Sequence record: PP456877.1
Length of the DNA stretch: 64,000 bases
Reading direction: 5' to 3' (one strand)
The position numbers and the translations under genes are program-made. The notes beneath the pieces are model-generated. The model saw nothing but the letters and a program-made list of their open reading frames with translations, was not told the DNA's origin and searched no databases. Every line of letters begins with the position of its first letter. Position 1 is the stretch's first letter. Shown here piece by piece: positions 16,453 through 62,448 of this stretch.

Positions 16453-16492
16453 TTACACTTTTGTAATATACTGTTTAAATAGGTTTGAATGT
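16453..16492 (-). promoter_or_regulatory. phiKZ-type early (virion RNAP) promoter
   Basis: Minus strand TTCAAACCTATTTAAACAGTATATTACAAAAGTG. Confidence 0.85.
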
Positions 16493-23179: not shown

Positions 23180-24343
23180 ATGTCTACTAAATCTCAACTA
23201 CCAAAGAAAATCTTCAATGTTGCTAAGAGTGATTATCATCTACCGGAAATTATTCTTGGAGATGATCCAGGTCTACTAGATTCAATCCACACTCATTATC
23301 CTAAAATGTGGGAGCTATATAAGCGTCTAAAGATGCTTGATTGGGATGAGCTAGAATTTGACTTTTCCACTTGTCTAGTAGAATTTGAAACGTGTGATAA
23401 ATCAACTTATGACATGATGATTAAGACACTGGCCTGGCAATGGGAAGCTGACTCTGTAGCCAGTCGTTCCATTGTTAATATTCTATCACCTGTCATGACA
23501 GATTCACGAGTATGGGCGGGATATGTACGTATTAATGATAATGAAGACGTACATGCTTTAACTTATTCTGAAATTGTACGTAATAGCTTTAAAGATCCTA
23601 AAGTTATTCTAGACGAAATTCTTAGGGTAGAAGAAGCACAAGAACGAATGGTTGCAGTAGCCCGCACTATGGGTGAAGCACATGACGCAGTTCATGCGTA
23701 TGCTCTTAATCAGGTACCCAATGATCAAGAACTTTACAATAAAGTATTCATGTTCTTCATCGCTCTATATTTCCTAGAACGTATCCAGTTCATGGCATCC
23801 TTTGCAGTAACCTTTGCTATTGGTCGTACTGGTGCATTCCAGCAAATTGCAGCCGCTGTTAAGAAAATTGCCCAAGACGAATTCGAAATCCATGCACAAT
23901 ATGGACAAGAAGTTATTCGTGCACTACTGGCAACTGAACGCGGTAAACTCGCTTACAGTCAATGTAAAGATAAAATCATTGAACTACTATGGGAAATTGT
24001 AAAGACTGAAGTTACCTGGATTAATTATCTATTCTCTGAAGGTCGTGAACTAACTGGTGTTAATGCGACTAAACTTATTAACTGGGTACTTTTCAATGCT
24101 AATGCCGCAGCAACATTCCTAAGTATTGAAAATGATGTTGTAGAACAGTATCAAGTGGAGTTTAAAGAATCAGCTGGATTTGATTTTGTTTGGCCAGAGA
24201 AGAACCCACTTCTTTATATGGAAGACTACCTAGATATTTCATCAACCCAAGCATCTCCTCAGGAAGAAGAGAAGCCTGATTACATGGTCAACGTTGTAAA
24301 TGATGTTGGTGAAGAAGAAGAATTTGAGGTTGACTTCTTATGA
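23180..24343 (+). CDS. nrdB: Ribonucleotide reductase class I beta subunit
   Basis: Diiron ExxH motifs (NEDVH, DEFEIH), FLERIQFMASF, C-terminal PDY tyrosine. Confidence 0.95.
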   Translation: MSTKSQLPKKIFNVAKSDYHLPEIILGDDPGLLDSIHTHYPKMWELYKRLKMLDWDELEFDFSTCLVEFETCDKSTYDMMIKTLAWQWEADSVASRSIVNILSPVMTDSRVWAGYVRINDNEDVHALTYSEIVRNSFKDPKVILDEILRVEEAQERMVAVARTMGEAHDAVHAYALNQVPNDQELYNKVFMFFIALYFLERIQFMASFAVTFAIGRTGAFQQIAAAVKKIAQDEFEIHAQYGQEVIRALLATERGKLAYSQCKDKIIELLWEIVKTEVTWINYLFSEGRELTGVNATKLINWVLFNANAAATFLSIENDVVEQYQVEFKESAGFDFVWPEKNPLLYMEDYLDISSTQASPQEEEKPDYMVNVVNDVGEEEEFEVDFL

Positions 24344-24753
24344 TTAAGATTATCGCATTCGTAGTTTTAATGTGGTCCACTGTCCTATTTGCAGCAACTG
24401 AAGTAAAATCAACTACAGATGGTATTATTGCACATTCAGAATGTCAGCTAGTTGCTAAAGATAGTAGTGTTGTCGGCACTACTGTTGGAGGTGCGGTTGG
24501 AGCCACCGCAGGCGCTGTATTAGGTCGAGCAATCTTTGGTAAATCTGGAGGTTGGGTAGGTGGTTTAATCGGTGGTGCCGCAGGCGGCGCAGTCGGTAAT
24601 AATGTTAGTGCTACTGAAACATTTCAATGTAAACTGATTGTTAATACAGATGGCAAGCAGTACATGGTTCAAACAGTTACCAATGAAAAACCAAAGGTTG
24701 GTGATAAAGTCACTGTTGTTGAAATGAATGATGGTACACGAGATATAATGTAG
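24340..24753 (+). CDS. Exported glycine-zipper protein
   Basis: Signal peptide; GGAVGATAGAVLG...GGLIGGAAGGAVG; SlyB/YcfJ-like. Confidence 0.8.
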   Translation: MIKIIAFVVLMWSTVLFAATEVKSTTDGIIAHSECQLVAKDSSVVGTTVGGAVGATAGAVLGRAIFGKSGGWVGGLIGGAAGGAVGNNVSATETFQCKLIVNTDGKQYMVQTVTNEKPKVGDKVTVVEMNDGTRDIM

Positions 24754-44067: not shown

Positions 44068-44100
44068 GTACACTTGTAATATAGATCTTAAATAAATTAT
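44068..44100 (-). promoter_or_regulatory. Early promoter
   Basis: ATTTAAGATCTATATTACAAGTG. Confidence 0.75.
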
Positions 44101-58711: not shown

Positions 58712-58745
58712 ATTAATGTAATATAGATTTCAAAAAAAATTTAAT
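58712..58745 (-). promoter_or_regulatory. Early promoter (variant)
   Basis: TTTGAAATCTATATTACATT. Confidence 0.65.
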
Positions 58746-58896: not shown

Positions 58897-58953
58897 TTCC
58901 TCGATTAATTTATATACATCACAGTATAAAAAGAGGACCCGAAGGTCCTCTAA

Positions 58954-59193
58954 TTATTTCTTGTAACTCTCAGGGCATCCCATTTTGAGTTTGCCATCCT
59001 TTGGGTCTTCGGCGAATAATACTTCATCTGGACACTTCTTAATAGGAGTGCCCTTCGCCTTATCTTCCCATTCTACAACAGGCATTTCTAATTTCTTACG
59101 AAATTGATACGTATCATAAAGAACATACGTAATCATTCCCATAAGAGAGATTACCCATACCCATGCAACAATTAGGATGATTCTAGTTATCAT
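58954..59193 (-). CDS. Membrane-anchored small protein with two Cys
   Basis: N-terminal TM; KCPD...GCP. Confidence 0.7.
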   Translation of the reverse strand: MITRIILIVAWVWVISLMGMITYVLYDTYQFRKKLEMPVVEWEDKAKGTPIKKCPDEVLFAEDPKDGKLKMGCPESYKK

Positions 59194-59560
59194 ACAACTC
59201 CTCGCCGACTATATTGAAACACCCATTACTGAGTTTTTCAGTCAGCATCTCACCAAGATCACTTCCCTCGCTCTTTGCCAAAAGCTTAAGTGCGGGATCA
59301 GTGAGATTTTGGTATATTACATCGACATTATCCAATGCGATATTAATAGCGAGTGCCTTATCACTCTGGTTTTTATCTATGGCAATGGATAGTTCATCTT
59401 GCAGTATTGCATACATCTCCAATGGCTCACCGCCATTAGTGTAGAATTGAACCATATTCTTTGCCAAGCTGTGCAGCACGTAGCAAGATGACACGGTTAC
59501 GGGTTGTGCATTAACCGACATTGCTACCATAGTGATAATGAGCGAGAAGACGTATTTCAT
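59183..59560 (-). CDS. Exported two-Cys helical protein (array member)
   Basis: Signal peptide ending VNA; VSSC ... NGCFNIVGE. Confidence 0.8.
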   Translation of the reverse strand: MKYVFSLIITMVAMSVNAQPVTVSSCYVLHSLAKNMVQFYTNGGEPLEMYAILQDELSIAIDKNQSDKALAINIALDNVDVIYQNLTDPALKLLAKSEGSDLGEMLTEKLSNGCFNIVGEELYDN

Positions 59561-59592
59561 CCTATTTTCCTTTTGAAAGTATTCGATATGAA

Positions 59593-60048
59593 TTAAATGA
59601 GTTCAACAATTACCATGTGAGTGAATTTCTCACCAATATGCTTCATGCAGTAATTGCCATAATACCCGCTGATAAAAGCTGCCAGATTAGGAGTAGTCAC
59701 ATTGTAACCTTGACTACGGATATAATCATGGATCTCTTTACTGTTAAGGTCATTATTGATTTTATTAAGACTATTGAATACGAATGTTAACGCAATCCAA
59801 TTATTGGTATCCAACTCATCTTTGAGTTTAGCAGAGTTGTTGAGCATAAGCACACCAACTTCATCTGCGCTATGACCTTCACTCATTCGAAATACAGCTT
59901 GTTTAGTAATGGTTTCAACCATTGCACACGACTGCACAGTGAGTTGAGCATCTTTTTTACCAATCTTGATTTCAGCCATTGCGGTATTGAACATGATACC
60001 GGTAATGGCAATGAGACCAGCGAAAGCTGCTGCAATTACATTTTTCAT
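59593..60048 (-). CDS. Exported two-Cys helical protein (array member)
   Basis: Signal peptide ending AMA; LTVQSC ... NYCMKHIGEKF. Confidence 0.8.
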   Translation of the reverse strand: MKNVIAAAFAGLIAITGIMFNTAMAEIKIGKKDAQLTVQSCAMVETITKQAVFRMSEGHSADEVGVLMLNNSAKLKDELDTNNWIALTFVFNSLNKINNDLNSKEIHDYIRSQGYNVTTPNLAAFISGYYGNYCMKHIGEKFTHMVIVELI

Positions 60049-60065
60049 TTTAAATCCTTCTTCAT

Positions 60066-60449
60066 TTATTTAATGGTAAGAATAGTAATTTTTTCAGGAT
60101 TTACTGGAACTTTAATTTTAGATTTATGTTGGAGAAACTCAACAACCACCATAGACTTATCCATTTTATACACTTCACATACTTTGACAAGCCTATCTAC
60201 TACGCAACCAATTTTACCGGCATTTTGAGAAAAGAAAGATTTTGCTTTTCTAATAGCCTCGCGTTTCTCAAGCATTTCCATACGCATATTTTCAATATGT
60301 TTATCGCGTTGAACACGATTAAACTTACGCATATGTCGTTCGATCTTACTAATTTCAGAAGAGTGTAATGAATAAGCAGCAGCTTCTTTCAGTTTCTCAT
60401 ATACTTCCACTGCCATTACCACGTGATCATCTTCAAAATTTCTTTTCAT
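60066..60449 (-). CDS. Hypothetical protein, coiled coil plus beta C-terminus
   Basis: ORF track. Confidence 0.7.
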   Translation of the reverse strand: MKRNFEDDHVVMAVEVYEKLKEAAAYSLHSSEISKIERHMRKFNRVQRDKHIENMRMEMLEKREAIRKAKSFFSQNAGKIGCVVDRLVKVCEVYKMDKSMVVVEFLQHKSKIKVPVNPEKITILTIK

Positions 60450-60462
60450 ATCTATGCCTTTT

Positions 60463-61257
60463 TCACTGTTTGATTAAATTTGACACTGCTTCTTGTTTAC
60501 ATTGAGTATTCATCCATAATGCAATGTCTTTGGGTTCTTGTCCAGTTTCCACCATATCGATAATGATACGGGTATTACGTTGTGCTTTCTCACGGGCATT
60601 TAACATATCAGGATCATTAATAATGAATTCCCTACCCATAACTGGATCTAATCCAATATAAGCTTTAGATGCAATAGTTCTCACCATTGCTTCATATTGG
60701 TCACATCCACGTTCAGTTAATACAAGGTTATCTGCATTGGCACTACCGCCAAATAGCAAACCTAGGAATCCATAGAAAAAAGTGTGACGTATTGTCTTCC
60801 AACAAATACGCATCTCTTCATTTTTTGTATAAAGCTTTTCCCAATCAAACATTAAATAGAAACTTTCTTTTTGGATAGAAGGGTGTAACCAAATAGGTTT
60901 AATACTTACTTCAAGAAGTTTACTATTTGGATTTTTACCAATAAAGATAACTTCAACAATGGCTCGTGCTAAAGCATCTTTTTCTTTACCATTCCATCCA
61001 AATTTTATTTCATCAGCCGTGATATAAAGACGTATTCCGTCACCCACGTATTTGGGTAACCAAACAGCTTTACCTAGTTGCATTGGAACACTATTAGGGA
61101 TCCCCCCAACCATCCAGGTAGCATTGGTGAAATGAATAGCGACATCATCATTTAACCACTTTAGAATAGCTGGCCTTACCCAGCTATCTACCAAATTACC
61201 ACATGTCAATGCAGCTAGCATAGCCATGAGTATAATGACAATATAAATACTAACCAT
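60463..61257 (-). CDS. Membrane protein fused to an array-type two-Cys domain
   Basis: N-terminal TM; internal signal-like FLGLLFGGSANA then LTERGC ... TQC. Confidence 0.7.
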   Translation of the reverse strand: MVSIYIVIILMAMLAALTCGNLVDSWVRPAILKWLNDDVAIHFTNATWMVGGIPNSVPMQLGKAVWLPKYVGDGIRLYITADEIKFGWNGKEKDALARAIVEVIFIGKNPNSKLLEVSIKPIWLHPSIQKESFYLMFDWEKLYTKNEEMRICWKTIRHTFFYGFLGLLFGGSANADNLVLTERGCDQYEAMVRTIASKAYIGLDPVMGREFIINDPDMLNAREKAQRNTRIIIDMVETGQEPKDIALWMNTQCKQEAVSNLIKQ

Positions 61258-61260
61258 ATT

Positions 61261-61620
61261 CTACTCCAAGTTAAATTTAGTACCAATTGCTTCAACACAG
61301 TTTTCAGCTAGCCTATCTAGAATAGCTCCATTGGTAAATCCTTTTCGTTTATTTACGCGAATATCAACTAAGTTTAATTTAGCATATACGGTACCTGCAT
61401 AGAACTCTAAGTCATCCATATCCTTACGAGAGATCATATCTAACTGCATCATTATCTCAAATTGGGATAGGTTCTTATCATAAAGCTCAGTTGCTTTTTG
61501 TGAAAGATTTACTGCCACATTACATGATTTCTTAGTAATACCCACTTCTACAGCGTGGGCAGGCTGACATGCAATGGACAGGATTGGCAGGAAAAGGAAT
61601 AATAGCCAATTCTTAAGCAT
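61261..61620 (-). CDS. Exported two-Cys helical protein (array member)
   Basis: Signal peptide ending AHA; ITKKSC ... ENCVEAIGTKF. Confidence 0.8.
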   Translation of the reverse strand: MLKNWLLFLFLPILSIACQPAHAVEVGITKKSCNVAVNLSQKATELYDKNLSQFEIMMQLDMISRKDMDDLEFYAGTVYAKLNLVDIRVNKRKGFTNGAILDRLAENCVEAIGTKFNLE

Positions 61621-61632
61621 GTTGTACCTCCA

Positions 61633-62040
61633 TTATTTTAGAGTAAGTGGTTTTGCTTCAAACGCACCTGCCGCTACACAACGCTGGAAATAACCATCAA
61701 TGATGAATTTCTCAGGAGTGGTCTTATAGACTTTAGCAGCATTTGTTGCACGTGGCAAACTTGCCTCAATTGCCATTTTATCTACCTTAGACCATAGGTA
61801 AAATAGACCAGTGAGTTCTTCAACTTTAGACTGGTTGGTCTTTAGATCTTTAGTGTTATTAAGGATATAATGAATCCTTTCATAAGTCTTCATTTGCACT
61901 TCAGTTACAGATGCACCTTTTACAAACAATTCATCTGCCTGTTTTACAAACTCGATGCATGAATCACGATTAGTGTACATGACAGCCGAGTTAGCAGTGA
62001 TAGTTACAATAGACAACATAAATACAATTACATATTTCAT
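61633..62040 (-). CDS. Exported two-Cys helical protein (array member)
   Basis: Signal peptide ending ANS/A; NRDSC ... QRC. Confidence 0.75.
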   Translation of the reverse strand: MKYVIVFMLSIVTITANSAVMYTNRDSCIEFVKQADELFVKGASVTEVQMKTYERIHYILNNTKDLKTNQSKVEELTGLFYLWSKVDKMAIEASLPRATNAAKVYKTTPEKFIIDGYFQRCVAAGAFEAKPLTLK

Positions 62041-62066
62041 AATGAATTACCTCAAAATTAATTTTA

Positions 62067-62330
62067 TTAACTATTGGTTTCACCACGAGTATTGAATTCT
62101 AAATCCAATACAACTTTAGTAAATTCTTCCAGTGCACCACCCTCGTAGATGAGTGGGTCACTGTCACCCCGGTACATGCTACCTACCGGTACTTGACCAC
62201 GAAACACCATCAGCATATCGTTTTTTACTATGACATGATGTTCATCCCCGACAGCAATGTCTTGGATGTGTCTCCAGCGTTCACGCAGTAAGCTGCAAGC
62301 GCACCATACGGATTTCAAACGTTCAGTCAT
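62067..62330 (-). CDS. Hypothetical early protein
   Basis: First gene after early promoter at 62364. Confidence 0.75.
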   Translation of the reverse strand: MTERLKSVWCACSLLRERWRHIQDIAVGDEHHVIVKNDMLMVFRGQVPVGSMYRGDSDPLIYEGGALEEFTKVVLDLEFNTRGETNS

Positions 62331-62355
62331 TGTATTGCCCTCTTGGTTATTAAAT

Positions 62356-62392
62356 TCATATTTGTAATATAGCTTTTTAAATAGTTTAAATA
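62356..62392 (-). promoter_or_regulatory. Early promoter
   Basis: TATTTAAACTATTTAAAAAGCTATATTACAAATATG. Confidence 0.85.
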
Positions 62393-62448
62393 CAAAAAAA
62401 GATAAATAAAACCCTCCCCGAAGGGAGGGTGTATATTAAGTAATTATT

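Follow-up and report, generated by a model that had tools for sequence, protein, structure and literature searches.

A tandem array of probable two-cysteine export proteins in an early-type gene unit of phiKZ-type Pseudomonas jumbo phages

The stretch of DNA analysed here (the window; 64,000 nucleotides of sequence record PP456877.1) carries, at positions 58,954 to 62,392, a run of short hypothetical genes on the minus strand, which an earlier sequence-only reading had described as an early-expressed array of five exported two-cysteine paralogues. Three of these five proteins (gp248, gp251 and gp252 in phiKZ numbering) are shown by profile comparison to be paralogous at the sequence level; gp247 is a probable member of the same family, and the C-terminal half of gp249 a likely one. 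We think it probable that the array encodes an exported, disulfide-clasped family of paralogues. We lean, with more caution, towards a fuller reading in which these two-cysteine domains act as envelope-directed binders after early expression.

The 3.5-kb stretch holding the array is 100% identical, at identical coordinates, to vB_Pae3705-KEN49 (KEN49), a phiKZ-type Pseudomonas jumbo phage. Its identity to phiKZ, where it lies at about 240,330-243,800, is 99.9%, and 47 phiKZ-type genomes carry it. The five open reading frames picked out earlier correspond to phiKZ gp247, gp248, gp249, gp251 and gp252, and their coordinates and gene calls were correct. All features are listed in Table 1.

Relationships and predicted fold

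The array proteins had been described as very divergent in sequence, and pairwise BLASTP among them is indeed close to nil. Our profiles were built from the mature domains only, so the signal peptides were unable to drive any of the matches. A gp248-type profile (six proteins from six genera, without gp251), searched against 357 proxy genes for the whole phage, returned gp251 (E = 2.5e-4) and gp252 (E = 4.6e-3), with the next match at 0.76; gp251 is the best non-self match of this profile genome-wide. In the opposite direction, a profile of gp251 and its reciprocal match, Psa21 gp333, recovered the gp248-type proteins of Phabio, phiPA3 and Psa21 and the RVTF4 and PS119XW neighbours at about 1e-3, as well as gp252 at E = 0.013, with no false match above the members. 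gp252 in turn has a reciprocal match in PS119XW gp300 (E = 6e-4 to 4e-3). The PHROG collection keeps these proteins in five separate groups of unknown function (15284, 22400, 26535, 27482 and 22383), each founded over its full length by one array protein; the sole contact between them is the match of gp251 to the group of gp248 (PHROG 15284, E = 0.0026), and the superfamily link is made in the present analysis. Two cysteines and one glycine are invariant in an alignment of 11 sequences from six genera, and a 10-sequence alignment adds one threonine.

The evidence for the other two proteins is of a different kind. A class C profile (PS119XW gp302 and Lu11 gp305) ranks gp247 first in the genome (E = 0.0087, next match 0.16), and these three proteins have a string of invariant C-terminal positions in common. 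When gp247 is aligned with classes A and B by hhalign, the match is weak (E = 0.035), staying in register over 88 columns with both cysteines aligned. The classes also stand in tandem in PS119XW (gp300-301-302). Of the five paralogues claimed earlier, gp248, gp251 and gp252 therefore stand by sequence statistics, gp247 is probable from class membership and synteny, and the C-terminal half of gp249 is likely, from the position of its motif and from a 264-residue library model that is equated with it by length only.

Short motifs point the same way. [ILVY]-T-x-x-[SG]-C occurs six times among the proteins of the 357 proxy genes (shuffled sequences average 1.6), and four of the six copies lie in gp248, gp249, gp251 and gp252, 3 to 11 residues beyond the predicted cleavage site; in gp248 and gp249 the motif occupies identical mature residues, 5-10. 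The earlier description of a TxxSC-like motif just after cleavage holds for these four proteins, gp247 having only a variant that is longer by one residue. C-x4-G-x-[KE]-[FEL] is found three times in the proteome, all within gp248, gp251 and gp252. The first cysteine lies 8-16 residues past the predicted cleavage site and the second 11-17 residues before the C-terminus in all five proteins, the latter as previously stated. Across the whole set of proxy genes, 31 have signal-like N-termini and six of these have exactly two cysteines, one near each end; four of the six fall in this run (Bonferroni P about 1e-4). The shared sequence features of the array are not due to chance.

Mature gp248 was modelled by AlphaFold2 from a 10-row alignment with high confidence (predicted local distance difference test, pLDDT, 93.7; predicted template modelling score, pTM, 0.83). 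The model runs from a strand (2-4) through helices 7-25, 30-43, 48-59/61-69 and 74-87 to a second strand (92-94), and since these are its only two strands, they must pair with each other. Cys10 follows the first strand by six residues, Cys85 precedes the second by seven, and these matching distances from the strand clasp would place the two cysteines side by side. The invariant pair thus fits a disulfide in the predicted structure, a bond that would need an oxidising compartment. The proteins had been called disulfide-stapled; what we can add is the invariance and placing of the cysteines, the bond itself being our reading of that geometry. The helical body described earlier is confidently predicted for gp248. 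For gp247 it appears in a low-confidence model, with four helices in the expected order, the cysteines lying where the first begins and the last ends; a fold search with that model matched only gp247's own library model.

We compared the gp248 model with a viral structure library, in which the entries of 151, 175 and 264 residues are identified by length only. Among gp248-type proteins, it matched Psa21 gp331 (template modelling score, TM, 0.94) and phiPA3 gp303 (TM 0.89), both identified by accession, and a 201phi2-1 protein (TM 0.81) identified by similarity and organism label only. Members of other classes that are identified by accession were PS119XW gp264, an orthologue of phiKZ gp229 (TM 0.80, root-mean-square deviation, rmsd, 2.3), the class B protein Psa21 gp333 (TM 0.64) and the class C protein PS119XW gp302 (TM 0.56). 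The 151-residue entry (A0A494W8Q1), which has the length of gp251, matched at TM 0.76 (probability 1.0), the 175-residue entry, with the length of Lu11 gp305, at TM 0.65, and the 264-residue entry A0A494WC04, with the length of gp249, at TM 0.72 (rmsd 1.7 over 85 columns, probability 0.97). Two longer proteins of unconfirmed identity, from 201phi2-1 (161 aa) and Phabio (157 aa), gave TM 0.76 and 0.80, respectively. Structure comparison had been proposed as a check on the array, and it comes out well for the class B and gp229-type entries (TM 0.64-0.80) and poorly for the model of gp247.

Export, anchoring and early expression

Export of the array proteins is predicted from a heuristic scan of signal features (n-, h- and c-regions, with small residues at -3 and -1). 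In gp247, gp248, gp251 and gp252, a short n-region is followed by 13-17 uncharged hydrophobic residues and then by a small-x-small site, and these N-termini pass as signals of the Sec/signal peptidase I type, as do those of all their relatives in five other genera. Such N-termini are found in every member and genus, yet they are dissimilar in sequence. The predicted cleavage sites are ANS in gp247, AHA in gp248, AMA in gp251 and VNA in gp252. The signal peptides were described earlier as ending in AxA; the signal-like segments are there, but those of gp247 and gp252 do not strictly follow this pattern and that of gp249 is internal.

In gp248 and its orthologues from phiPA3, Phabio and PS119XW, a lipobox-type cysteine ends the hydrophobic run, and beyond it come a few conserved residues and another small-x-small site; the UniRef entry for the gp248 cluster is labelled 'Lipoprotein'. 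gp248 and these orthologues in three other genera may be lipoproteins rather than free periplasmic proteins. The residue at -1 of this cysteine is atypical in Psa21 and RVTF4, and the cysteine is absent from gp248-family members P0010, P0011 and P0012, as well as from gp247, gp251 and gp252. As several members lack it, part of class A may be lipid-anchored, but such anchoring does not characterise the family as a whole. The earlier term 'periplasmic effectors' agrees with the features that point to export, with the reservation that gp248 may be lipid-anchored.

No cleavable signal at the N-terminus precedes the two-cysteine domain of gp249, the C-half of which had been read as having a signal peptide. 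The signal-like segment is internal (residues ~149-175), and the last 116 residues consist of an Arg/Lys-rich segment, a hydrophobic run, a small-x-small site (ANA) and the two-cysteine domain. Because positive charges precede the internal hydrophobic segment and none are present at the extreme N-terminus, the positive-inside rule would suggest that the N-terminus is outside, the middle cytoplasmic and the two-cysteine domain periplasmic. The resemblance of this internal segment to a signal peptide that was kept hints at a gene fusion, and in no relative do the halves stand as two genes. An internal translation start for the C-terminal half was considered and rejected, as the sole purine-rich stretch abuts the ATG without a spacer. 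The N-terminal two thirds of gp249 (60733-61257, minus strand) comprise a hydrophobic segment and a soluble part of ~125 residues, which had no match in any search.

The eight minus-strand genes from gp246.1 to gp253, all annotated as hypothetical and none of them broken, form one unit bounded by two phiKZ-type terminators. Both hairpins (62430-62411 and 58951-58932) fit the conserved phiKZ terminator motif known from long-read transcript mapping (PMC10914365), and the upstream hairpin is kept in the divergent phiKZ-like contig L015. Early promoters of phiKZ are AT-rich elements around position -10 that are preceded by a T-rich part, and the 5' leaders mostly measure 31-40 nt (PMC8244752, PMC7598289); here, the motif lies 34 nt from the start of gp246.1. 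Its 8-nt core was read from the window itself at 62364. Taken alone, this core occurs 14 times in the window against 7.9 expected, which is not a significant over-representation, and in a literature search for the 8-mer none of the 10 papers listed, out of 481, was relevant. The extended AT-rich motif (core plus upstream part) has 12 strict sites in the 280-kb genome, of which 10 are intergenic and most lie 34-80 nt before a co-oriented gene. Within the window it is found at 16463, 17937, 18442, 34447, 56034 and 62364, with partial copies at 44076 and 58718 (minus strand). These copies usually lie just past a terminator hairpin, and the one at 58718-58725 opens the next unit (gp254 onward).

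By sequence, the unit therefore has the marks of a phiKZ early unit, namely an AT-rich promoter motif before its first gene and a phiKZ-type intrinsic terminator after its last. The early promoter that had been placed at 62364, upstream of the array, is well supported by motif and conservation, being a full copy of the extended motif that is kept in L015. Early expression, also claimed before, fits this motif and the detection of the gp248 orthologue of phage Churi at 15 min post infection in two proteomic experiments (PMC11849849).

gp246.1 had no family match in family-model and PHROG searches and is absent from L015, where the terminator and promoter-like motif directly precede gp247 (L015 1861-1994). 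At the other end, small membrane proteins with two closely spaced cysteines also follow the exported-protein genes of PS119XW (gp303; L006 5348-5518) and Phabio (363; L004 4351-4506). The position of gp253 matches theirs, but similarity between them is not detectable.

Table 1. Features of the gp246.1-gp253 unit, in window coordinates
Feature	Coordinates	Strand	Remarks
Intrinsic terminator hairpin closing the upstream unit (after gp246, HD-domain phosphohydrolase)	62411..62430	-	8-bp G+C-rich stem, T-rich tail
Early-promoter-like element: AT-rich upstream part and 8-nt core (62364-62371)	62364..62395	-	34 nt before gp246.1 start codon
gp246.1, 87 aa	62067..62330	-	First gene of unit; without export signal
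gp247, 135 aa	61633..62040	-	Class C, probable member; signal-like N-terminus 1-18; Cys28/Cys121
gp248, 119 aa	61261..61620	-	Class A; signal peptide; lipobox-type Cys18; AHA site 21-23; Cys33/Cys108
gp249, 264 aa	60463..61257	-	Internal signal-like segment ~149-175 (DNA 60733-60813); C-terminal two-Cys domain 176-264 (DNA 60466-60732); Cys185/Cys253
gp250, 127 aa	60066..60449	-	Interspersed non-member; without export signal
gp251, 151 aa	59593..60048	-	Class B; signal peptide 1-25; Cys41/Cys134
gp252, 125 aa	59183..59560	-	Links classes A and B; signal peptide 1-18; Cys26/Cys114
gp253, 79 aa	58954..59193	-	Last gene of unit; N-terminal membrane anchor; 2 Cys in C-terminal part
Intrinsic terminator directly after gp253	58932..58951	-	G+C-rich hairpin and T tail

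Distribution, selection and dispensability

gp248 is the only array member with tblastn relatives beyond the phiKZ-type phages; it was found in phiPA3 (gp303), Phabio, PS119XW, HPP-Temi, phiHQ, BRkr, RVTF4, Psa21 and D6, whereas gp247, gp249, gp251 and gp252, searched against 50,697 phage records, matched phiKZ-type phages only. A full HMMER scan of mature gp248 against 1.84 billion representative proteins returned six proteins, all of phage type, among them a few metagenomic forms and no cellular homologue. A single-protein scan of IMG/VR gave one PA7-like contig, and a word-indexed search of proteins, for which gp251, gp248 and the family alignment served as queries, gave nothing but close relatives or training sequences. 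Searches of Pfam, NCBIfam, PADLOC and the sequences of the Protein Data Bank (PDB) yielded no match above chance for the array proteins.

The family is not confined to the array but has members elsewhere in the genome and in other genera. A sixth member, phiKZ gp229, lies outside the window (KEN49 74557-74922, minus strand; L009:24557-24922). It has a signal peptide, a cysteine eight residues into the mature chain and another 12 residues before the end, and it is 42-53% identical to proteins in 16 other Pseudomonas jumbo-phage records. The survey of copy number that had been suggested gives one copy near the gp248 locus in phiPA3 and Phabio, two in Psa21 and RVTF4, three in PS119XW and five in phiKZ, thus varying by genus. 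Lu11, which infects Pseudomonas putida and is unclassified within Caudoviricetes in its record, encodes a class C member with a long Lys/Glu-rich C-terminal tail (gp305; L014 3420-3947), so the reach of the family extends beyond the phiKZ-related genera sampled. The long-established and conserved member is gp248, which several genera of Pseudomonas jumbo phages carry; gp251, gp252, gp247 and the domain of gp249 are copies that have diverged. In their present form these copies are seen only in phiKZ-type phages, with relatives of the gp251 and gp247 classes in PS119XW, Psa21, RVTF4 and Lu11.

Dozens of partial proteins labelled 'Klebsiella pneumoniae', on contigs of ~210-410 nt, fall in the same 90%-identity clusters as the array proteins or are 86-91% identical to them (P0003, P0006-P0009, P0031-P0039, P0044, P0045 and P0055). 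Their likeliest origin is phiKZ-like reads that found their way into Klebsiella assemblies, rather than genes of Klebsiella itself.

Selection was measured against L015 (59-94% amino-acid identity), in which all the cysteine pairs are kept. The ratio of non-synonymous to synonymous substitution rates (dN/dS) ranges from 0.03 to 0.23 across the genes of the unit, these being rough figures because dS is saturated. gp248 has the lowest ratio (0.03), and gp250 is the fastest-evolving gene (59% amino-acid identity, dN/dS 0.23). The sequence comparison indicates purifying selection on the orthologues, and diversifying selection on them can be rejected with the same proviso about dS. The family had been called diversified, which is apt for its strongly diverged paralogues but not for the orthologues of each.

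A viable transposon insertion has been isolated in orf252, and the stretch orf184-orf304 has been described as mostly non-essential and as the presumed home of host-interaction genes (bioRxiv 10.1101/2025.11.23.690004). The unit is accordingly accessory and largely dispensable in laboratory culture, the insertion reported within it being that in orf252 only.

Possible functions and known analogues

In the reading towards which we lean, an eight-gene early unit would supply five products that carry one small domain of 90-130 residues and four helices, in which the N-terminal strand pairs with the C-terminal strand and a single disulfide connects the N-terminal end of the first helix with the C-terminal end of the fourth. 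Four of the five products begin with a Sec-type signal peptide and would be exported through Sec, after which the host Dsb system would oxidise them. The rigid bundles would then serve as binders, every one aimed at an envelope component of its own, protein or lipid, and would condition or protect the envelope of the newly infected cell. Our working model is Spackle-like exclusion, although we hold an exclusion or inhibitor function only tentatively.

T4 Spackle (gp61.3) is the closest working analogue, by analogy and not by membership. It is an early periplasmic protein with a cleaved signal, and its mature form is a 75-residue helical bundle with a disulfide between Cys29 and Cys81 (precursor numbering), which inhibits the tail lysozyme of a superinfecting phage (PMC7677548). 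The array proteins would share with it the early gene, the signal peptide and the small compact helical bundle, and presumably also the single disulfide from a cysteine a few residues into the mature chain to one near the C-terminus. Spackle differs in being a single-copy gene of T-even phages, whereas the present family is expanded to 1-6 copies per genome and has one class that is possibly lipid-anchored. The small lipoproteins of the T5 Llp and Cor type act on the outer membrane from the periplasmic side in receptor-blocking superinfection exclusion (bioRxiv 10.1101/2022.06.28.497910). gp248 and its phiPA3, Phabio and PS119XW orthologues resemble them as small phage-encoded proteins with a lipobox, which unlike in the Llp/Cor type is absent from several gp248-family members and from the other classes; the array proteins had no PHROG or Pfam match to the Llp/Cor families.

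Several results weigh against this picture of envelope-directed binders, or against the family on which it is built. No result of the analysis points to a target, and the isoelectric points of the paralogues span 4.2 to 9.5, without any surface signature in common. We infer each of export, cleavage, lipidation and the disulfide. Homology to Spackle found no backing, as the family profile gave chance matches only against all PDB sequences and the 50 best matches to the gp248 model in a Foldseek search of the PDB did not include Spackle. For gp247, profile links of its class to the other classes reach E = 0.1-0.17 only, the AlphaFold2 model made with the class C alignment has a pLDDT of 53, and its library model (PA7 I7DAI5) agrees poorly with the gp248 model (TM 0.42). 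For the C-terminal half of gp249, hhalign against the family (alone or with its orthologue) gave only an out-of-register match of 14-15 columns, and the structural support depends on equating a nameless 264-aa entry with gp249.

The main rival to Spackle-like exclusion is lipid handling, which we consider possible at a lower level of belief. Here the domain would be a saposin-type folded leaf that opens to bind lipid, and soon after infection the proteins would draw lipids out of the envelope, carry them between sites or rearrange them, for example phospholipid, lipid A or the acyl chains of lipoproteins. There may be a tie to the lipid vesicle that at first surrounds the incoming genome of nucleus-forming phages. 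The best matches of the gp248 model among solved structures are all of the saposin family: the top five to six Foldseek hits in the PDB, at TM 0.50-0.69, are led by saposin A (probability 0.90, TM 0.60/0.69, rmsd 3.2), Na-SLP-1, saposin C, the swaposin insert of prophytepsin and saposin A again (TM 0.60/0.68). The number and order of the helices, the kinked third helix and the putative disulfide tie between the N- and C-terminal helices are shared with these saposin-like proteins (SAPLIPs). However, the E-values of 0.7-1.8 are not significant, up-and-down bundles of four helices are common, and no Pfam model of the saposin B type (SapB) was matched beyond chance at E <= 1. Saposins also have six cysteines and three disulfides, whereas the present domain has two cysteines and one putative disulfide as well as an extra clasp of N- and C-terminal strands. 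They are eukaryotic lysosomal or secretory proteins, whereas the present ones would be bacterial and periplasmic. Finally, a member is present in Lu11, which may not be a nucleus-forming phage.

The boldest form of this idea, a saposin fold of bacterial viruses in which nucleus-forming Pseudomonas phages export lipid-binding bundles early to reshape or stabilise host membranes, seems to us improbable. The early genome vesicle is thought to derive from the inner membrane, which would make its lumen topologically periplasmic, and early proteins exported through Sec could therefore reach it. If it held true that such bundles act in the vesicle, they would be the first phage proteins assigned to this compartment, and a true resemblance to saposins would be an unexpected fold for the bacterial periplasm.

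Somewhat less plausible than lipid handling in general is a role as immunity-like proteins or inhibitors against weapons that act in the periplasm, such as type VI peptidoglycan hydrolase effectors, bacteriocins or envelope anti-phage sensors of host or competitor, and not against superinfecting phage. The architecture of a small exported binder would suit such a role, as would the varied charges among the paralogues, a copy number of 1 to 5 between genera and the location of the genes within a large non-essential region for which host-interaction or anti-defence functions have been suggested (10.1101/2025.11.23.690004). On the other hand, no PADLOC, Pfam or NCBIfam model was matched, no known immunity protein was among the fold matches, and the orthologues are under purifying selection with no evident sign of an arms race.

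It is quite unlikely that the array is not one family but a set of unrelated small secreted or membrane proteins that share a generic signal, helices and two cysteines. The almost blank pairwise BLASTP would be explained in this way, as would the unreliable gp247 models and the lack of significant profile links from gp247 and the gp249 C-terminal half to gp248, gp251 and gp252. It is harder to explain the specific profile matches with no false matches above the members, the invariant cysteines and glycine in 11 sequences from six genera (with the threonine in the 10-sequence alignment), two motifs that are nearly exclusive to the array genes in the proteome, and the tandem array of the same three classes in PS119XW. 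The TM of 0.64-0.80 for class B and gp229-type members identified by accession also speaks against this reading.

Least probable of all are components of lysis timing (periplasmic antiholin-like or spanin-like proteins): these are small exported helical proteins with one possible lipoprotein among them, and phiKZ does show multiplicity-dependent slowing of lysis, but its lysis cassette lies 100 genes away, at gp141-144, with spanins that complement lambda Rz/Rz1 and a holin whose large domain is cytoplasmic (PMC12894885), and the unit has an early-type rather than a late promoter, so we rejected a lysis role.

A full-text search by gene number for gp247-gp253 found one relevant mention, the table for phage Churi that lists gp248, and a search by locus tag found none. 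Exported accessory proteins encoded by phages are of a known kind; the novelty lies in this fold, in its multiplication to a tandem array and in its being limited to Pseudomonas jumbo phages. Five separate orphan groups are joined here into one family with a testable location and architecture, and the resulting superfamily has six copies in phiKZ, members in several genera of Pseudomonas jumbo phages, a confident predicted fold, a clear cysteine signature and no cellular relatives. Studies of phiKZ have concentrated on the phage nucleus, the early vesicle and the take-over of the cytoplasm, and almost nothing is known of how jumbo phages act outside the cytoplasm. The unit is a candidate envelope-directed module in the large 'dispensable' arm of the phiKZ genome, which is now being searched for host-interaction genes, and phiKZ-type phages are in therapeutic use.

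Two further proteins with putative export signals were noted. One, of 85 aa and outside the window (KEN49 71994-72251, minus strand; L009:21994-22251), has a signal-like N-terminus and two cysteines, one near either end, with no detectable similarity to the two-cysteine family and no Pfam match. The other lies within the window (24340-24753, plus strand), directly after the gene for the small subunit of ribonucleotide reductase; it is an exported or membrane protein of 137 aa, unrelated to the array, in which a signal peptide is combined with a glycine-zipper 2TM domain (PF05433; the match, E = 1.1e-7, passes the curated cut-off).

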